Shown here: piece after piece, positions 1 to 57,873 of the stretch
How positions within the stretch are numbered: position 1 is the first letter of the stretch
Layout: every line of letters starts with the position of its first letter
Assembly (NCBI GenBank): GCA_038496445.1
Contig: JALMLS010000285.1
Coordinates: forward strand, 74,675-138,674
Direction of reading: 5' to 3'
DNA: 64,000 nt
Origin: Trichosphaerium sp. ATCC 40318
Taxonomy: Eukaryota > Protista > Tubulinea
Notes under the pieces: generated by a model
What the model was told of the DNA's origin: nothing
What the model saw: only the letters and a program-made list of their open reading frames with translations
The model's database searches: none
Position numbers and translations under genes: made by a program

Positions 1-1475
1 TTCAAGTACGTGTTATTTTTAGTACAAATGTACCATTCCATTAAACGTTTAGGCAAGTACCACGTGGGTATTGGGATTCTGTTCAAAATCAAAGAGATGC
101 AATGGATGTTATTGGCCGCGAACTAGGAGTTAAAGATATGGCTGGGTGGTATAATATTAGGTACAATGATGTCACCAAAATATCAGGAGGCATTAGTCAC
201 AAGTAAGACAATACAATAAAAAGACCCAACCTTACCTTGTTTGCTTGTAGGTATGCACATTCTATTTCAAAACTACTACGAGACGTTTATCCTAAGTACA
301 AATGGCGACAATCCAAGTTCATGTAAGCCTCTCTATTAATAAGCCAACTGGGTATTAAATAATACTATGTAGGCAGACACCTATGAGTAAATTGACGTTC
401 ATGCCGAAGATATCTACAAAGAATTATAAGCACAAACAACCAGAGATTTCAGAGTATGGTACCGTATCACCTCCGGAATACTAATCTAATTGTCATCTTA
501 AAACAAAAGGTATGATGAAAACTTTTTCGCTGCTCCTGCATCTGAATATAGAAGACTTAGACGAAAGAAACTTGGACCACTTAATTTAGTACAAGGTTCA
601 AAACGTTATAAAAGAATTGTTGCTAAAGTACAAGAAATGACAAAGTCCTTGAATATTGTAAACCCGGAGTCTTGGTACCTCTTTTACCCACATGGTGTGA
701 AGTATTCTCGGCCTCTAACACATAATCTAGGTATCGTATGTCTCCGGATATAATCAAGAAAGCTGGGGGTGCAGGAATACTTCGGTATTGGCCACAAGCA
801 CTTCAATACTCAGAACCTCATTTTGCTTGGAACTGGAGGAAATTTTCTTATTCGATAAAAAAGGCAAAACAGAGGTACACTATGCTCACTACATATATTG
901 TTATCTTAGGGTTTTATTTAGTTGGCTTCTTGAGTGTATGCGTGTAATATTCCCAGATATTGCTGTGGAGGAAGAACGAAGCATAGGATTCAGAGAAAAT
1001 GGCACTCCGCTGACAATTGACGTTTTTGTTCCAAAGTATAACATTGCCATTGAATATCAAGGTACCTCTGAATGTATTTTACACTACTAACTGTATCACA
1101 GGAGAACAACACTACCAGGACGTCTTACCTTATCACCATGCATCAGCACAAAAGCGGCGAGATTATGAAAAGTTCCAACAATGTGAGGCAAATGGTATTC
1201 ATTTGGTGCCTTTACCTTACTGGTGGGATTTACGTGTTGGATCCCTTCGTGCAACTATCAAACATTTTATACCACACGTGCCTCTGAAATCGTCATCAAG
1301 GATACATAAACCAGTATTGGATGTAGATCAATATAAGGCACTTGACGTTGATAATCTCAAGTGTAAGGTTTTACAACAACCTGGAGAAGTCATTACTTTT
1401 GGATTATTTGATGAACACAGACTTCGAAATGATCAATATAACGCTTCAAATAGTAGGAGACGCTCACCACAATAA
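1..1475 (+). CDS. Trp-rich helical-repeat protein with C-terminal PD-(D/E)XK (RAP/Vsr/DUF559-like) nuclease domain; 5' end outside window
   Basis: Spliced exons give PRGYWDSVQNQRDAMDVIGRELGVKDMAGWY...YPKYKW..KF repeats, then IFPD..EEE...LTIDVFVPKYNIAIEYQGEQHY...RRDYEK...CEANGIHLVPLPYWWD. Paralogous to 24035-26598. Confidence 0.85.
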
Positions 1476-22450: not shown

Positions 22451-23794
22451 TTAGATGATGGACTTTACAGCAAGCTGTAAGGTTCTATAAATTTGTTAAG
22501 AAGAAAGAAAAATGTAAAAGAGTAAAAGTATGTACAGTTGTTGTGATTTTTTTAACCAGGCTTTGTTAAATCTTTTCATTTCCCAAATCACATCTGGGTA
22601 CAATTGTTGTAAAGCGGCTGGGTAGTACCTATACATGTATTTTCCCCCGAGAAATTCAAGTTGTCTCGTAGAAACACGGTACCTAATCCCAATCAGACTA
22701 TAAAAATAAAAACTACAAAGTTCATAAGTTACCATTCAGAAGGCGAACTGATACCATAATGCGCTCTTACACGCTTCAAAAATTGAACCTGACTCTGCAT
22801 AGTACTCCAGCGACCATTGCGCCTTTTTTTGGGTGGAAAAAGCCGTTCAAGTGCGTTTGGTAGACTTGTGTACCTAAAAAGAAAAGAATTAATATAATTT
22901 CAGATACAAAAGAAAAGAAAGACCTTGCTAAGATTGTTTCTCCTCCAGCATCAACAATTTGATCCCTGGTGACATGATTCCAACATTCCTTCTCGTAAAC
23001 ACGTAATTGTTGTCCAATGACATTAAACATATCTCTCTGGCGAGTGAGGCTGTCCCAGTAGTCAATAGGTAAGAATCTACCAAGAATGAGGTTTTTATCG
23101 ATTATTTTTACCGCTTGGACTCACGAAAACTTCCAAGGGAGCCAATTATGTGTTGGGTATAACGCTTGCAAACACTTCGACAACGACAAATTGTACCTGT
23201 GTAAAAAGTCAACAAACCTATTATTCACTTGCACTTATCGATATGCTAGTGCACTACGGGTGTACTTACATGCGTAAAACAGCGTATCCTTCTGGTGTCT
23301 TCTCAAACACGCCCTGTGGTACTTTGTACCAACCATCAAGATTCTTGACATTTAATTTTTTGGCAGTAGTGTTAACGACTGTTTGTTGGTGTTCAATTTG
23401 AGTCCAATGGCGTTGAGGTGCTTTTCTAATGCAATGTTTAGATGTAACAATGTGTTGTGTGCCCTCGTACTTGAAGCGCCATAGTGCCCACGCATAGCGT
23501 GGATATACGTCCTGCAGAGCTTTTGAAACAGAATTACCGTATCTACAACGCGTTAGACAAAAAGAGTGCAAATTGCTGTTGTGCTGACACGCTTAGTACG
23601 CCCCCACCACCTTTGGCGTGAATTTGTCGCGCTGTAGCATTATACCAAGCTTCTAAGTGCGTTACGCCAAGTTTTTTGCCAAGTTTATCAAACGCTTTCG
23701 CTCTATTGTCTATACGCGTCCAAGTACCTCTGTATCAATTAGAAGAAGCTTTTTCTCTGCCAAGAACTTACCGACAAACTGCGTTTGTGCTCAT
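22451..23794 (-). CDS. Trp-rich helical-repeat protein (4 repeats) lacking the nuclease domain
   Basis: Repeats such as KKLGVTHLEAWY..GGGGVL..YP..W..WRF. Last repeat WYRVSTRQL..LGG..YYP matches the paralogs. Stop follows KKSQQL-TLQLAVKSII. Confidence 0.8.
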
Positions 23795-24034
23795 CACTGT
23801 CACATTGCTCTTTTGAAGTTAACGTGCTGTGGCTCTGCTTCACGTGGGCGGTTGACTTTTTTTTTATTGTGGCTTAACAGCTCGTTAGAAGTCTTGTTCG
23901 CCAGTTTTCCAGCTCCATCAGCAAGTGATTACCATTTGGTCGTGTAATTTGACATTACATCCAAACGTTGGCATACAACGCTCATGGCGATGGAATTATT
24001 ATTTATACAGTCTATACGTCAGTTGTAGTAACCA

Positions 24035-26598
24035 ATGTAAGTCTTTTAGCCTGTTCGCACCCAAACAGCTTACAATTACGCGTTAGGCGCGTCTATCACC
24101 TTCAAGTAATTAATAATGTGGCTGAACAGCTTAAACTCAAACACCTTGATGAATGGTACTCAACACCAACAAAAGACGTAGTAACACACGGCGGTGGTAG
24201 TACACTAGCGTAAGTCTTTACCACATCGGGTAAAAACGCGTAATAACGCTTTACATAAATTTTAGATACTTCCAAAACTCAGTTTCAGTATGCTTACATA
24301 CGCTGTATCCTAACCACAAATGGATTCCTTGGAAATTTGCGTACGACAGCTGTATTTCACATAAAGAAATAACTTCCAAAACAAGAAAAGTACCAAGGCA
24401 GTTTTGGAGCAGTATCAAGAACCAAAGAGCTCTATTAAACCATATTGGTAAAGAAAATAGTTTAAAGCATCTAGATGATTGGTATAAACTTGAATTTGAT
24501 CACGTGTTTAATAATGCAAGCGCACTCTTGAAGTAAGTCTTCTTCCAACCGCAAACATACACGACTACAATTACTAATGACACTTCGTAGCCACTACTAT
24601 GATGGATCGCGATTGTATTTATTGGAGAGCGTGTTTCCAAAGCATAGTTGGGATCCAAGTAGATTTATGTACGTCCCATAGTTATCACTCTTTATGCTTA
24701 CTAAAAATAACAGCAACTTGCGTGAATCGACAAAATCTAAAAGTAACGAAGGCTACATCAATACTTTAGCTCAAAGACTAAATGTTAAGTGTCTTGATGA
24801 TTGGTATGCTGTAAATAATACAGATTTATACCGTCACGGTGGAGACAGGATGAGGTTAATACTCAACACAATACAATTCTAAATATCAACATAGGAACAT
24901 TGTAAATAGCTCTTTAATGACGCTTCTCACTAGAATGTATCCGCGCCACAACTGGTCAGCAAGTAGCACGTATGTATGCTATATCTTTCTTTTACTCATC
25001 TTGTATTTGTAGAAATAACCTAAAAGACAACGATCAAAAGAAAATGATACTAGAGAAAACTGCTAAAAAGCTAAATATAAAAACATTAGATGACTGGTAT
25101 ATTGTATCTTATGATGCGTTTACCAGTCAAGGTGCAAACGGGTTTCTCATGTAAGTAATACCTATAACATATAACACTAACAAGTATCATTCAGGGATGA
25201 ATACAACGGGTCTATTATTGAATGTGTGGCTAGTGTCTATCCTGGACACGAATGGAATAAAAATCGTTTCAAGTACGTCATTGAGTTACTGACTAAACGA
25301 AACCTTAATGTTTCTTAGATCTTCTAGTTCTCTTAATAAAAATGAACGTAAAGAATTATTTGATAAGATTGCTGCAAAGCTAAAAATAAAGGAGATAGAA
25401 CAGTGGTATAGTATTGAGTTTAGCAAAGTTTTAAAAAATGGAGCAAGAAAAATAATGTCGTAAGTGAAGCTTTTCGTTTTTTTTTGTAGACTTGCTTAAC
25501 ACTTGTTCGTTGATCTTGTTATTTTAAGAAATCTATGTAATGGTGATGCATTACATTCTTTACTATCTCAAATATATCCACATCAACAGTGGTCTCCATG
25601 GAAGTTCATGTAAGAATAGTATTTGTAACGTTTTTCTTATACCACTTTTTGCAAGGTCATCACAAGGATATTGGCGTTATGTTAGCAACCAAAGAGATTT
25701 TCTACTCTCTGCTCAGAAGCATCTTGGAATTGAGGAACCTGAAGAATGGTATAGTGATTATTTTGGGTTGGCGGCCTAATATAGTGAAGGTATCGCGTTT
25801 CAACACAGCAAATACGAGACTTGGGAGGTCAAGGTATCTTGACGTATTGGCCACAAGTTCTGGTACGCGATTCCTTCAGTTGTTAAGACCTAACACGTAC
25901 AAAAGTTGCGTATCGAGCCTGAGTTTCCATGGAAATGGAAGAAGTTCTCTTATTGGCAAGGCAGACTATCAAAGCAACGGTACATTTACACAAGTTTTAG
26001 TGATGTTTGTTTGTTTATTAGAGTTGTAGGCAGCTAATTAAGTGTTTGCAAGTAATTTTCCCACGTGCGCAAGTACTTGAAGAACACGTTATAGATTTAA
26101 GTGCAAGCAACCAAGAGAGAGTCACTCTTGATGTGTACATACCGGAGTTTCATCTAGCACTTGAATATCAAGGTAAACTGACGAACCGATTTGCGTTCTT
26201 TCTGACATACGTCATTAGGAGAGCATCACTATAGGGATGGAGTATTCTTCACTGATCAATTTTCAGCCATTCAACGCACAAGGGATACAGAAAAGCTTCA
26301 AAAATGCTCAGACATAGGTATGTTTCATAGACGATACTGTTTTTACGAAAGGGATTAACCTAACGTAGGAATTTGCTTGGTTCATATCCCTTATTGGTGG
26401 GGCGGTGGTATAGACGAGATTGTCATGACACTGCGTTCAAATGCAAGTCATATTGACTTGTCAGACATAAAGTGCCAGAGTGACGCAAAACCATTAATGG
26501 CATTACCTGAAGAGACCAACGTACCCTCAAAGGGTATAAACCTAATGTTTCCGAATAGTAATCAAAACATGCATTCTCCTTTGTACGCTACTCAATAA
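24035..26598 (+). CDS. Trp-rich helical-repeat protein (6 repeats) with C-terminal PD-(D/E)XK (RAP/Vsr-like) nuclease
   Basis: Six L..WY...G...YP.H.W...F repeats; nuclease VTLDVYIPEFHLALEYQGEHHY...RDTEK..C..IGICLVHIPYWW. Start probably an AT|G split by intron 24037-24086. Confidence 0.88.
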
Positions 26599-26877
26599 AA
26601 CTACATGTACAATTAAAACCGGAGGCGGTTTTGGTAATTTTTGTGCAAAAGAAGAAAGAGCAGACAAGTTTCCGTAGTTGTAATGGTGTGAGGCTGATAT
26701 GTTTATTCTTGAAACTTGGGCCATTGTAGCTTGTCGGAAACTGTTCCACATTATTTCTTCTAAAAAGAATCTATTTTTAAATTTAGAATTTCAATGAATG
26801 ATACGAAAATAAAGTTAGACACAAATCAACAAAGCATACTTGCAACACAATAACTCAGCAACAACAAACATAAAGCT

Positions 26878-27602
26878 ATGACAGAATACAAACTAGTAAT
26901 CGTAGGTGGCGGTGGTGTTGGTAAATCCGCACTTACAATTCAACTTATCCAAAACCAATTTGTTGATGAGTACGCACCTTAACTTGACTGTTTTAAAGCG
27001 TTTTATCTTATAATAAGTAGATACGACCCAACAATTGAAGACAGTTACCGCAAACAAGTCGTCATCGATGGTGAAGTATCATTATTGGATATTCTCGATA
27101 CTGCCGGCCAAGACGAGTACTCCGCAATGAGAGATCAGGTAAAGCACCGTTTTGTACGAATTAACGTCTAATATATCGATTAGTACATGAGAACTGGCAC
27201 TGGGTTTCTCCTTACATACTCGATAACGAGTTCGAGCAGTTTCGACGAAGTAAACAGATTCAGAGAACAAATTCTAAGGTGAGTTTTTGCCCATGTTTAG
27301 TAACGCGCGGTTTTGTTCCAATTTCTCACTTTCTTTTTTTTAGAGTCAAAGATAAAGACAGAGTTCCAATGGTATTGATTGGAAACAAAGCTGATCTTGA
27401 GATCGAAAGACAAGTTACTACAACAGAAGGCGAAGCTGTCGCTAAGAACTATTGTATACCTTTTTTTGAATGCTCTGCTATGACACGACAAAATGTTGAA
27501 GAGGCTTTCTTTGAACTTGTTAGAGAAGTAAGGAAGGTAGATGCCCCTGTAAACAAAAAGGCTTCAAAGACAAAAAAATCCAAACGATGCTCAATACTTT
27601 GA
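26878..27602 (+). CDS. ras: Ras GTPase (RasG/RasD-like)
   Basis: [43 protein letters not shown]; CaaX CSIL. Confidence 0.97.
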
Positions 27603-27871: not shown

Positions 27872-30800
27872 CTAAAAAGGTTGAATATATTCGAAAAATT
27901 CTCGAAGGCCATTATAGTTTGCAGCGTGCGCCAAAGCCATAGGTGTTTTGTAAAGAGGATGTTGCTCCAACTCTTTCCACATACCTACAAACTCAATATA
28001 TGCTTCTTGATCAGCACCCTTGTCAATATCAAGCTTGCTAAACACTCTTTGTAAATCAATGGATCTTGACTTCTTGCAATGAAAGCGTATGTATACATGA
28101 ACTAGAGATATTAGATCATGACAAGGCTTGCAAACAATCGGCTTGTTTTTGATTCTATGATCCAGAACATCCAAACTTGCGAACATGATAGTTCCAGAGT
28201 ATTCCTTTAGTTTATCCAACTTGATAGCTGCACCCCAGTCTACGAGATGAGATTCACCTTCAAACGTCATGATATTGGAATCACTGACATCTCTAACGAA
28301 GAATATTAGTAACATAAAACGAGCTAAGAGTTGACCTACCTATGAATAAATCCAGCCTTATGTACGGCTTCTAGCGTAGTAACTAGCGAAGATAATGAAG
28401 GGCACTCATTTAGTGTCTCTATTCGCTTGCATATAGGGGTGGTTGCAAGGTAAGGAATACCATCTGGAGTCTTTCCATACTCAACCTTTATCAAACTAGT
28501 GAGTAATTGACAAGATGAACAAAATCAAAAAAGGTACGTACTAAGGTTGGCACACATGTTATCTTTAAGTCATTCAATTGCTTAATGACCTCCTTTTCGT
28601 GTATGGCAGTACTAGCATACTGCGTTTGAAATATTTTGACAGCCAATTTCTTGTCGTTTACATCTACTCGATAAACGGAGGCTGTTGCTCCGGTACCCAA
28701 TTGTCTCCTTGGCGCACACGCTTTCCCTTCAATCATGAGTAAGGGGTAGCTCCATCCGAGCTCCTTTGGGGTACAACTTAGAAGATGACTAATCTTTTTG
28801 CACCCAGAAGCGTTTTTGGAGTCAATCTTGTACTCCTTTGTAAAGTGGTATGTGTACGGTTGAGGAGCGTCTCTGCCGTGCCACACCAAGCGTATGAACA
28901 TAACGGTTTTTGTGTTTGATAGTACTCCCGTTATGTGTTTTCTAGGCCTTTGTGCAGCCATGATACCGGCCAATGACGCCCTAATATAAAAATAAGCAAA
29001 CAACAAAAAAAACAAGAAAAGAGTAAGACGCACATGCACTGTCCTTTGGCTGCAGAATCAAGCGGACCAATCTTAGTCTCCCAAACCATAACCACTTGCA
29101 ACAGGTCTGGTTTCTTCGTGTCTATGCGTTCAACATTAGCAGTGAAGATGAGATCAGGTCTCTGCTTTTTAATGATGCCATAGCCATCGTACATCATGGC
29201 ATCATGAGAGTTGATGACCTGAAACAGTGTTAATTGTTTTGGTCAAAACTGTTTTCTTTGTACCTTAAGAAATGGGCTTCCAGCTTTCTTGAGGAGCTTG
29301 TAAGTGTAAATCTTTAGAATATGCTCTTCATCTATTTTACGCTTATCACGTTGCTCGAGTGCTGCCAGCCCCTCCTCTTTTTCGATTTGAAGTTCGAGGT
29401 TAAGATCATTCGAGTTTTTATTGATGTAATCAAACATAGCAATCAGATCAGCAGGTTCGACCTTAGCCCAAAAGGAACTACAATTTTGCTTGTATTTGTT
29501 ATCATTAAAGCAGTTTGAATAACCTAGAAGACAAATAAGAAAAAAAAGAAGAAAAAAAAGAGAATGGCGTACAAATAATCGAAACACCTGGTAATGCCAT
29601 AAATCTATGAAATTGTAGCTCCCCTTTAATATCAGCTACGTCTCCTACTACTTTTTCAACCTTGGCAGTAGTTTCTTGTTTGTCTTTTTCCATTTCAGCC
29701 ACACTTTTTTCCAACTTCGCTATCGCTTTTTTGTCTTCTTTCATGGTTTCCATCATTTGCGTTGTCATCTGTTTGTTTTGTTCTATTGCTTCTTGCATCT
29801 TTTTCAATACTTCAGCTTTGACTTCAACTTGTTTTTTTAAGGACGTGTTGAGAGTGTCTTCCGTCTCGGCTTTTGAAGCCGTAGCGCGCTTTGGAGAACC
29901 AGAGTTTGCTTTAGTCTTAGGTCTTTTTGCACTAGATTGCGTGGATGGAGTTACACCTTTGCGCTTTACAGAAGCAAAGGCACTTTCTACACAATTATCA
30001 GATTTCTGATAAAAACAAAAAAAATTGCAACATCTTGGGGACATACTGTTGGGTGGAACGACGGGATATCGTAAGCAGAGTATACGCCAAACCCATGAAG
30101 ACTTTGTTGAGAGGTTGTCCAAGAAGCCTAGACGAGAGGCAAGTTTCTTTAAAGCGGATACAGTCTGTTTAAGCAATGCCTCTAAACAAAGAATGAGTGA
30201 CAGCTATAATGTAGCACTTGAACGCTTTTAGGCTGAAATGGAGCTAACAAACCAATGGCGCTCTTGTGACAACTTTTAAACCAACAAGAACGAAAAAAAA
30301 CGGTTAAAACGAAGAAGGCAATAAAGAACGCGTAGGGTACTAAGAACACGGGAAGAGAAGCGAAAACAACTCATATAAAACGTTTTGAAGGTTGGACACA
30401 ACAAAATACCACAATAGTGGTAAAAAACGCGTTTTACTGTATGTTTGGGCGTATTTACGTACTTGTTTCATCAAAGTCGAAGATATGTTGTACTATCGTT
30501 GGCACGTCTCCCTCAAACTTCATAGAGGACCCAAGGCTTGTAATACAGTCAGGATTGGACATACTCAAAGCTTTGAGGTGCTCCAAAAACCTTTGGCGGG
30601 ACGCCTTCTCTCGCCAGCTTAAATCTCCCTCTTCATCATTGTCCATTACTTCCCAATCGCTGCTATTGCACACCAGTTGGTAGATAAAAACGGAAACTTA
30701 ACGTTGAGCTTTATTGTCATTCTTTTTTCTTTGTTGGCTCTACATGCTGCTGTACACGTTTAAGACTAAGGAGTGGCGACTTGGCGTACAATGTCAACAG

Positions 30801-56790: not shown

Positions 56791-57873
56791 ATGTCAAAGA
56801 ACTGCCACGTACTTGTTCAAAATGCAAATCTACTTACTAATGAGCGTACTATAGGTAAATACAGCTGATTCAGGGCACTCCTTCTTATTGGACCTTCCTA
56901 TTGAGCTACAGCTTGATATTATGGATTTAGATGCACAGGTGTAAAGATGCCGGATTTATACTATCTCAATTATACTGAGATTCCGTAGGCATCTCATACT
57001 AAATAAAATAGTATGAAATCTCCCGACTAAATACTTGTAATAACTGTAAGTAATAATAAACATAATTTAATAACTAAACTCGTGTTACACCTTCTCTTCA
57101 ATCACTGACTAAGTACGTCGTGATATTATACATATACTAATTAGGTAGTAAAAGTAAATAACGGACGCTTTTACACAGGTGTACAACAAATGGCCTGTAT
57201 TATCAAAATACAGTGCAAAGACAACAAGGTATGATGACAAGCTTAAAAAGCACGGAAAATGGCGTAGAGGGTATACAAACAAGGTAATGCACCACAAGTT
57301 GTATGTGAATGTTCTTGGAATCACGGACAACTACATGGAGTGTTTAAGTTATTCAATTCCAGTGGTATTCTATCTCAAGTAAACTACGTGAAAGGTAAAC
57401 AAGAAGGACAGTACAACAAGTGGCATAGAGATGGTAAGCTTTGGGAACAGATTAATTATATCAATGGTAAGCGAGAAGGTGTATACAAGAAATGGTTTAA
57501 AAATGGACAGATAATGAAGGAGTATAATTATGTTAATAACCAGAATGAAGGTGATTATAAAAAATGGCATATAAATGGTACATTGCATGAGGAATTTAGA
57601 TTGGAAAACAATAATGTAGGATCATATCAGAGATGGTATGATAATGGACAAGTTTGGGAGAAGTATGAGTATGTTAATGGTAAACGAGAAGGAGACTATA
57701 AACTTTGGCATAAAAATGGAGAGTTGTACAAAAAGAGTACATACGTTGACGGTTTTCTAGAAGGGGAGTTTTGGGTATGGTATAATAATGGAAGTGTGAT
57801 TTGTAAGGGTATTTTTGTAAAAGGTAAGGCTGTTTATGAACAAGGTGAATTGTCGATCAGGCACAGGTTTTAA
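56791..57873 (+). CDS. F-box + MORN-variant (MORN_2/YwqK-like) repeat protein; frameshift or intron near 57270
   Basis: LLDLPIELQLDIMDL..YNKW.VLSK F-box; about 7 repeats NY.NGKREG.YKKW..NG. Confidence 0.8.

Follow-up and report, generated by a model that had tools for sequence, protein, structure and literature searches.

Modular helical arrays that read nucleic acids, such as those of PPR, PUF and TALE proteins, are valuable for research on organellar gene expression and as engineering scaffolds. In the RAP helical-repeat proteins (FASTK and FASTKD1-5, Chlamydomonas OPR-RAP and apicomplexan HPR-RAP), an N-terminal array of 35-40-residue helical hairpins is followed by a restriction-endonuclease (REase)-like domain at the very C-terminus. 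Other described systems of interest here are the Vsr-like homing endonucleases, exemplified by I-Bth0305I, and the viral DUF723/DUF4379-nuclease proteins, in which binding modules are placed in front and a nuclease behind. RAP proteins have been reported as undetectable in Amoebozoa and Excavata (PMC8190603).

Here we analyse gene C, located on the forward strand (positions 24035-26598) of a 64,000-nucleotide stretch of contig JALMLS010000285.1 from Trichosphaerium sp. ATCC 40318. This whole stretch is referred to below as the window, and coordinates are counted from its first letter. The gene was confirmed to be real and expressed. It encodes a 596-residue protein with six helical repeats and a C-terminal domain predicted to adopt a Vsr/DUF559-type nuclease fold; as judged from its sequence, the combination of a basic, rigid array of variable length with an intact Vsr-type nuclease points to a nucleic-acid-guided endonuclease. 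For the family as a whole we favour, tentatively and with less than even confidence, a role as organellar RNA-processing or stabilisation factors, the counterpart of the helical-repeat RAP proteins. The family is large and expressed, has a very confidently predicted fold without any solved relative, and is absent from the literature found; in some of its members the array is paired with a nuclease that has kept all of its catalytic residues. Two paralogs, A (1-1475, forward strand) and B (22451-23794, reverse strand), lie in the same window.

Structure and transcription of gene C

The coding region of gene C was modelled as 17 exons and 16 introns, which together yield an open reading frame (ORF) with no internal stop. 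The introns are short (40-69 nt), with GT..AG borders in all 16 cases. RNA evidence was obtained with a 2,801-nt query from contigs of four public runs, representing at most three samples and three studies. Spliced contigs (identity ≥99%) verify 11 of the 16 introns: 24037-24086, 24210-24265, 24341-24385, 24533-24590, 24669-24713, 24855-24894, 24970-25012, 25610-25655, 25749-25789, 26173-26218 and 26318-26368. Reading frame and homology define the introns at 25151-25194, 25273-25318, 25460-25528 and 25863-25905, and in part that at 25980-26029, which a loose contig end also supports. For the intron starting at 25863, contigs read through 25844-25857, consistent with this donor; an alternative donor at 25844 was rejected as it breaks the reading frame, which 25863 restores. 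A single 88-residue exon spanning 24266-24532 was ruled out by RNA contigs that show 24341-24385 to be an intron. One contig from run X1 carries a template-switch oligo tail, seen as the loose end GGTATCAACGCAGAGTACGGG at 26013. Hence run X1, and with it at least part of the RNA evidence, is cDNA, and the contig end at 26013 is a cDNA library artefact rather than a transcription start.

The start codon is itself split, with AT at 24035-24036, an intron at 24037-24086 and the G at 24087. An RNA contig from run X2 begins at 23970 and splices 24036 to 24087, delimiting a 5' exon (23970-24036, forward strand) that holds the AT of the start codon together with a 14-codon upstream ORF (ATG at 23984, TAG at 24026-24028). 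A preliminary description of the window had placed the start at 24035, which is exact according to this RNA-verified split ATG. A start at the ATG at 23984, followed by a weak 47-nt intron, was ruled out by the RNA contigs. Directly 5' of the gene C ATG, in-frame TAG and TAA stops are present in the RNA. An ATG is read in both the spliced and the unspliced RNA (AT / GTAAGT...AG / G), with in-frame continuation only if the intron is spliced. Furthermore, the intron at 24341-24385 is stop-free and, at 45 nt, a multiple of three, so that its retention would place 15 in-frame residues between repeats 1 and 2. It seems likely that paralog B contains a similar in-frame retainable intron (..WRFKYEGTQHIVTSKHCIRKAP..).

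The raw six-frame translation contains many stops and no prokaryote-style ORF of more than 150 residues over the region, as might be expected if the repeat were decaying, the gene a pseudogene or the ORF pattern a product of chance. However, translation of 23900-26750 reveals repeat and nuclease motifs spread across three forward frames and interrupted by GT..AG stretches of 40-70 nt. Every stop lies within these short introns, 11 of which are removed in RNA contigs from the three studies, while the spliced ORF is intact, colinear with homologs and made of repeats that each score above 50 bits. The closest protein, P0010 (an MMETSP sequence annotated as a complete ORF), is colinear with gene C at 31% identity over ~600 residues. 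Both the divergent last repeat and the nuclease lie within the aligned part, and the gene model thus has independent support. This alignment used the first version of the model, and the two later corrections both concern the N-terminal end. A non-gene origin is refuted by the RNA and the spliced model, and its remaining probability is practically nil.

Each of repeats 1-5 spans two exons, the first (123-147 nt) covering helices 0-3a up to GGxxL and the second (75-81 nt) the YxGSLxxxLxxxYPxHxWxxWKF segment. Repeat 1 (24087-24340; exons 24087-24209 and 24266-24340) begins within helix 1, without the PxGFW..NQR head, and scores 63 bits against the repeat hidden Markov model (HMM) described below. 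Repeat 2 (24386-24668; exons 24386-24532 and 24591-24668; 76 bits) is the most canonical, reading VPRQFW..NQR..LDDWY. It is followed by repeat 3 (24714-24969; exons 24714-24854 and 24895-24969; 53 bits), repeat 4 (25013-25272; exons 25013-25150 and 25195-25272; 62 bits) and repeat 5 (25319-25609; exons 25319-25459 and 25529-25609; 56 bits). Repeat 6 is divergent and, with the linker SYWQGRLSKQR, is spread over three exons (25656-25979; 55 bits). The putative nuclease domain occupies 26030-26598 and comprises a core (26030-26466) and a 44-residue tail. Phase-2 introns flank every repeat, and the exon pairs of repeats 2-5 sum to 216-225 nt, in each case a multiple of three. This two-exon, phase-2 cassette clearly illustrates the way in which arrays can grow by exon duplication.

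The repeat family

A profile of two window exons was searched against 1.84 billion representative proteins, returning 3244 clusters at E≤1e-3, 1171 at E≤1e-10 and 42 at E≤1e-30; the profile held 15 intron-derived residues, and matches lay in the two blocks flanking these. Matching proteins carry 4-21 matched stretches each. The recorded sources of members are Heterolobosea sp. BB2, Cavostelium apophysatum, Vannella and an MMETSP transcriptome; further members lie on metagenome contigs on which actin, rhodanese and Skp1 genes are also found. In the ESM Atlas, the clusters closest to the family belong to Evosea, Tubulinea and Discosea. The family is found mainly in Amoebozoa and Heterolobosea. 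Word-indexed searches with P0010 and its three-repeat segment returned almost nothing, and a literature search found no paper on this repeat family. Among 169 proteins, the repeat number ranges from 3 to 13 (mostly 4-8), with a single protein at 25; the latter, P0003, is 2124 residues long and is encoded on an ENA contig of 1.37 Mb, its repeats being counted by HMM. The nuclease is present in 24 of these 169 sampled members, the other 85% or so consisting of the array only.

A repeat HMM built from 363 units of family members detects six repeats in the gene C protein, at 53-76 bits each. The consensus of 868 family repeats (VPxG[YF]Wxx..NQRxF[LFM]DxLxxxLGIxxxxDWYxV[ST]xx[DQ]IxxxGGxxLLxxYxGSLxxALxxVYPEHxWxPWKF) agrees with the ~65-70-residue motif of the preliminary description. 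The scaffold of these repeats is strongly conserved (W38 97%, Y39 86%, W75 96%, F80 99%, P71 89% and W13 90%). The highest-entropy HMM positions are 43, 47, 63, 56, 57, 44, 16, 52 and 49, and the most variable ones cluster on helix 3a (43, 44 and 47-49). Located directly after the DWYxV motif and a Ser/Thr cap, helix 3a (43-49) resembles, we infer, the recognition helix of a helix-turn-helix (HTH). The gene C array has an isoelectric point (pI) of 9.3, compared to 5.8 for the nuclease domain; the median pI of the family is 9.05, and 81% of its proteins exceed pI 8.

Fold predictions and profile searches were run on the homolog P0010 and on family alignments rather than on gene C itself. An AlphaFold model of three repeats, based on a 121-sequence alignment, shows an all-helical unit of 65-75 residues with five short helices. 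The high confidence of the model (predicted local distance difference test, pLDDT, 96.1; predicted template-modelling score, pTM, 0.82) points to a fixed inter-repeat geometry. In a Foldseek search with this model, no PDB entry matched at E≤0.001, the best being the annexin-like alpha-14 giardin (E 0.05, template-modelling (TM) score 0.23). Exhaustive VIA-align comparison with the PDB likewise found no chain at Z≥5 (maximum Z 3.9); the best rows (Z 3-4) place single repeats on TetR HTH domains, the Slx4 CCD, and SAM or winged-helix domains. Annexin repeats were thus rejected as the fold, given the TM of 0.23 only, as were LWY effector repeats, with no LWY structures among the matches. A fold search of BFVD with the three-repeat model gave nothing significant; hence the repeat is not evidently viral.

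Profile searches lead to a similar picture. Across ten full-length members and 121 three-repeat segments, none of the Pfam families reaches its cut-off, and PPR, TPR, OPR, HPR, PUF, TALE and mTERF are without hits. The proposal that the repeat is none of PPR, OPR, TPR or TALE therefore stands, both by Pfam and by the lack of a significant PDB fold match. Single window exons gave nothing meaningful against Pfam, RAP being unmatched too, and the NCBIfam search gave nothing; PDB sequence searches with one exon and with the nuclease profile produced chance-level matches only. Recurrent sub-threshold Pfam matches of the repeat are Myb_Rap1, a SAM-like domain, a CH domain and DUF4046.

The last of these, DUF4046 (PF13255), is the closest. 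Its best score of 15.6 bits (P0010:93-316) lies below the gathering cut-off of 22.8, and E≤0.1 is reached in 5 of 121 three-repeat segments; one repeat aligns to positions 14-87 of the 90-position profile. The three-repeat model superposes on ESM Atlas DUF4046 clusters with TM 0.78/0.68 (model/match, over 220 residues) and 0.67/0.49, and PF13255 is assigned to 55% of the members of the best-matching cluster. A language-model search also ranks DUF4046 clusters, at 0.89 and 0.78. An Atlas cluster labelled 'homing endonuclease associated repeat' (PF18780) is a weak match by comparison (TM 0.39). Judging from these models, the repeat is a distant relative of DUF4046, an uncharacterised Pfam family without a solved structure. 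A literature search found no paper mentioning DUF4046 or PF13255, and the match thus carries no functional information. The view that the repeat is uncharacterised holds in that no Pfam family passes, although it now has a distant, sub-threshold relative that is itself uncharacterised.

The nuclease domain and its possible targets

For the C-terminal domain, a restriction-endonuclease fold of Vsr/DUF559 type is predicted with confidence (pLDDT 82, core above 90), as had been anticipated from the sequence. Its elements follow the order alpha-beta-beta-beta-alpha-beta (H5-26, E33-40, E47-54, E59-64, H80-96, E100-105). VIA-align matches the model to 3hrl (the putative endonuclease-like protein NGO0050, which we take to be of DUF559 type; Z 9.2), 3r3p (the I-Bth0305I homing endonuclease; Z 9.0), 1cw0 (Vsr; Z 8.8), 9g6k_Li (a T. 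gondii mitoribosome large-subunit chain; Z 8.5), 9gek_A (FASTKD4 FAST1-FAST2-RAP; Z 7.7), 6z1p_AS (a Tetrahymena mitoribosome chain; Z 7.5) and 6rd4_2 (a Polytomella ATP-synthase subunit; Z 7.2). The chain 9g6k_Li is presumed to be a RAP-domain protein, the title of the entry not naming it. Foldseek puts the same structure group on top. These matches are the very templates (1vsr, 3r3p, 6rd4/6rd6_2 and 6z1p_AS) on which RAP domains have been modelled (PMC8190603). RAP domains are among the structural neighbours; the Pfam RAP profile gave no hit.

Alignment of 22 C-terminal domains (22-33% identity) gives the consensus ELDxFIPSLxLAFEYQGEQHY...RDxxKxxxCxxxGITLIxVPYWWD, with D, P, E, G, H, D, K and PYWW invariant. 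The invariant positions D51, E62, G65, H68, D87 and K90 are all present in genes C and A, and in gene C the key residues are the D of LDVYIP, E-Y-Q-G, the H of EHHY, RD..K and IPYWW. The residues that had looked intact in the preliminary description are thus invariant throughout the aligned members, with D-x10-EYQG (LDVYIPEFHLALEYQG) replacing the D-x9-EYQG spacing given there. The invariant residues D51, E62, Q64, H68 and D87 are spaced nearly as Asp51, position 62, His64, His69 and Asp97 of Vsr and the EDxHD residues of I-Bth0305I (PMC3239194), a correspondence drawn from spacing, not from side-chain superposition. The catalytic set expected of such nucleases, with a metal-binding Asp, an acidic residue, a His as general base and a second Asp, would thus be complete. 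From these features, the nuclease is apparently catalytically intact and active.

By sequence, the affinities of the domain lie with phage enzymes. The C-terminal domains of P0010 and P0011 match phrog_559, 9084, 3339 and 7140 (E 1e-11 to 1e-5), annotated as homing, HNH or intron-encoded nucleases. Pfam DUF559 was unmatched by the nuclease, and DUF2726 remained sub-threshold (18.6 vs 24.7 bits). At least 317 IMG/VR loci encode relatives, which are common in phage and giant-virus contigs, in line with the early proposal that giant viruses possess similar nucleases. In the inspected IMG/VR ORFs, DUF723/DUF4379 zinc-ribbon repeats or an HTH precede the C-terminal nuclease, and the viral proteins share the motif pair ..D(I/V)(F/Y)(I/L)P..(I/L)A(I/F)EYQGxQH(Y/F) ... 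(I/V)PYW with the amoeba family. The nearest Atlas structures are also viral (Uroviricota, Nucleocytoviricota), with TM 0.65-0.68 and the labels 'DUF723', 'Homing nuclease family' and 'Treble clef zinc finger/DUF559'.

Three phage or giant-virus ORFs (L006:3699-5231, L043:4518-5252 and L079:3783-5291) carry 2-6 tandem zinc-ribbon modules before the EYQGxQHY...IPYW nuclease. The module reads ..HGDKYDYS..V.I.CPKHG.F.Q....HL.G.GCP.C and corresponds to Pfam DUF723/DUF4379 in L006 and L043. Here the same nuclease is joined to a modular array of another kind, unrelated to the helical one.

An alternative that we regard as only slightly less likely than an organellar RNA role is that gene C encodes a DNA-targeting modular endonuclease, in which a nuclease derived from phage or giant-virus homing-type enzymes was fused in amoebae to a helical, HTH-like array. 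Such a protein would cleave nuclear or mitochondrial DNA, or the invading DNA of giant viruses, wherever the array recognises a site. It would have a part in defence, repair or recombination or be itself a selfish element, and the nuclease-less neighbour B could be its regulator or protective partner. The PHROG matches, which extend to both halves of the paralog A nuclease, are in keeping with this, as are the viral relatives with their zinc-ribbon or HTH modules, the viral Atlas structures, the complete Vsr-like catalytic set and the lack of a presequence in gene C. In its predicted fold, too, the domain is like that of I-Bth0305I and Vsr. However, viral and homing enzymes differ from the amoeba proteins in their use of zinc ribbons, NUMOD or a single HTH instead of DUF4046-like helical modules, and most members of the amoeba family have no nuclease. 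Gene C, with its 16 spliceosomal introns, is nuclear and belongs to a paralog pair, whereas homing endonucleases are encoded in introns, inteins, free-standing mobile elements or viral genomes. The family comprises multi-intron host genes with conserved intron phases outside introns, inteins and mobile elements, a homolog on another contig is neighboured by ordinary eukaryotic genes (actin, rhodanese, Skp1), and many members appear mitochondrially targeted. Furthermore, the repeat HMM found no match in 80 viral loci, which adds to the BFVD result. A role in anti-viral defence, originally proposed as one option, is not borne out by the PADLOC defence profiles, none of which matched P0010, P0011, P0005 or the paralog A exon. 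If the proteins do target DNA, they would represent a host-domesticated homing-type nuclease with a new targeting array, and could bear on amoeba-giant-virus conflict and genome engineering.

Helical repeats are often protein-binding modules, and the structural neighbours of the nuclease model include chains of the T. gondii and Tetrahymena mitoribosomes and a subunit of the Polytomella ATP synthase. A structural or scaffold function could be envisaged on these grounds, in which the array makes contacts with proteins or with ribosomes and rRNA and the nuclease-like domain binds without cleaving, similar to mitoribosomal RAP proteins; the lack of the nuclease in most members is compatible with this. 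We nevertheless deem it quite improbable. The 22 aligned sequences, with as little as 22-33% identity, all have the full Vsr-type catalytic set, which argues for retained chemistry, and the arrays are basic.

Our preferred reading of the family as organellar RNA factors is based first on architecture and structural neighbours. As in RAP proteins, a helical array precedes a C-terminal-most REase-like domain, and the nuclease model matches both the RAP module of FASTKD4 and the presumed T. gondii RAP chain. Second, the majority of paralogs (all but 24 of 169) lack the nuclease, resembling the PPR, OPR and HPR families, and RAP proteins likewise form multi-paralog families with the nuclease in only some members. 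Third, presequence-like N-termini occur in many members. Among 153 members starting with Met, at least 15 residues precede the first repeat in 47, and in 24 of these 47 the N-terminus is presequence-like (≥3 R/K and ≤1 D/E in the first ≤30 residues; e.g. MLLSRLSARRLTSISLNK.. and MTSLRQSLLFPRLVLIRTGRQF..). The call was made by composition, and ~12% would be expected, our own estimate from a family D+E content of 11.8%. These sequences fit mitochondrial import for a subset of the family. Finally, the lineages in which RAP is reported undetectable are rich in this family (PMC8190603).

Several observations weigh against an organellar RNA function. Gene C has no N-terminal extension and thus no presequence, in-frame stops being present upstream in its RNA; B and the closest homolog P0010 are likewise without one, as are 106 of the 153 Met-starting members if an extension of ≥15 residues is required. 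Pfam RAP was unmatched, at E≤10, by the C-terminal domains of P0011 and P0005, and by sequence the nuclease is significantly matched only by the phage homing/HNH PHROGs, which are DNA cutters. In fold, single repeats weakly match DNA-binding HTH domains (TetR, Myb-like), with Z below 4. A test for a recognition code gave hypervariable-position identities of 0.13-0.19 for corresponding and 0.09-0.13 for non-corresponding repeats, in protein pairs that are 38-75% identical and may be paralogs. Hence, while the variable positions do cluster on one helix, no code signal is seen between corresponding repeats of these divergent pairs. The likeness to RAP proteins also has clear limits: Pfam RAP, FAST_1/2, OPR, HPR and PPR are all unmatched, the unit of 65-75 residues and five helices differs from a hairpin, and here the catalytic residues are fully conserved and the sequence is akin to that of phage homing nucleases.

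If the family does act on organellar RNA, the basic array of six modules would bind a specific stretch of nucleic acid, with helix 3a, the most variable helix, following the invariant DWYxV helix in an HTH-like manner and serving as the reading surface. The metal-dependent Vsr/DUF559-type nuclease would then cut near the array-bound site. At the level of the family, this would amount to gene-specific processing or stabilisation of mitochondrial RNA, making these proteins functional counterparts of FASTK, OPR-RAP and HPR-RAP. As the family is concentrated in Amoebozoa and Heterolobosea, where RAP is reported missing, its filling of this gap would explain how mitochondrial transcripts are processed there. 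Like TALE, PPR and PUF proteins, it has tandem helical modules in variable copy number (3-25), a conserved scaffold and hypervariable positions on one helix; unlike them, it shows no sequence or fold match to these families and has a unit twice as long. That each repeat is a programmable recognition unit, reading a small, fixed number of nucleotides via helix 3a and making the array-nuclease proteins a natural counterpart of TALENs or PPR-nucleases, we consider unlikely.

Paralogs and neighbouring genes

The window is eukaryotic in character, with 32-42% GC (typically ~37%) and no long prokaryote-style ORFs. As proposed at the outset, it contains three loci of the repeat: within it the repeat HMM matches only 51-320 (+), 22568-23731 (-) and 24103-25755 (+), which belong to paralogs A and B and gene C. 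The nuclease HMM matches A (920-1301) and C (26028-26466) but leaves B unmatched, also in agreement with the nuclease having been assigned to two of the three.

Paralog B (22451-23794, reverse strand) has four canonical repeats and a divergent one. It contains an intron positioned as the pre-nuclease intron of gene C, after which a stop follows at ~10 residues (..KKSQQ / LTLQLAVKSII*). Of the nuclease domain, only ~10 residues of the first helix thus precede the stop, which indicates that the nuclease has been lost and that, by its sequence, paralog B is a truncated copy. The two genes are arranged head to head, the ATG of B at 23794 being 240 bp from that of gene C. Given this divergent orientation, the short distance and a gene C transcript that starts at or before 23970, B and C probably share a bidirectional promoter.

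The 5' part of paralog A (1-1475, forward strand) lies beyond the window edge. Its nuclease domain (HMM matches at 920-1066 and 1101-1301) is intact, with IDVFVPKYNIAIEYQG / GEQHY..RD.EK..LPYWW, and both exon halves match phrog_559 and phrog_9084 (E about 2e-4). An ESM Atlas feature search with a paralog A exon gave low scores only.

Just 3' of gene C, at 27279-27602 (+), lies an exon for the C-terminal half of a small GTPase of the Ras family, with a CAAX box as its last residues (..KSKRCSIL). Pieces of a protein-kinase-like ORF (..LAVKIF.., ..HRIKNKPIVCKPCHDLISL..) lie at 27872-29039 (-) and probably form one intron-containing gene. Further downstream, a 177-residue ORF at 57340-57873 (+) is made of MORN/YwqK-like repeats (YVNGKREGxYKKWHxNG).

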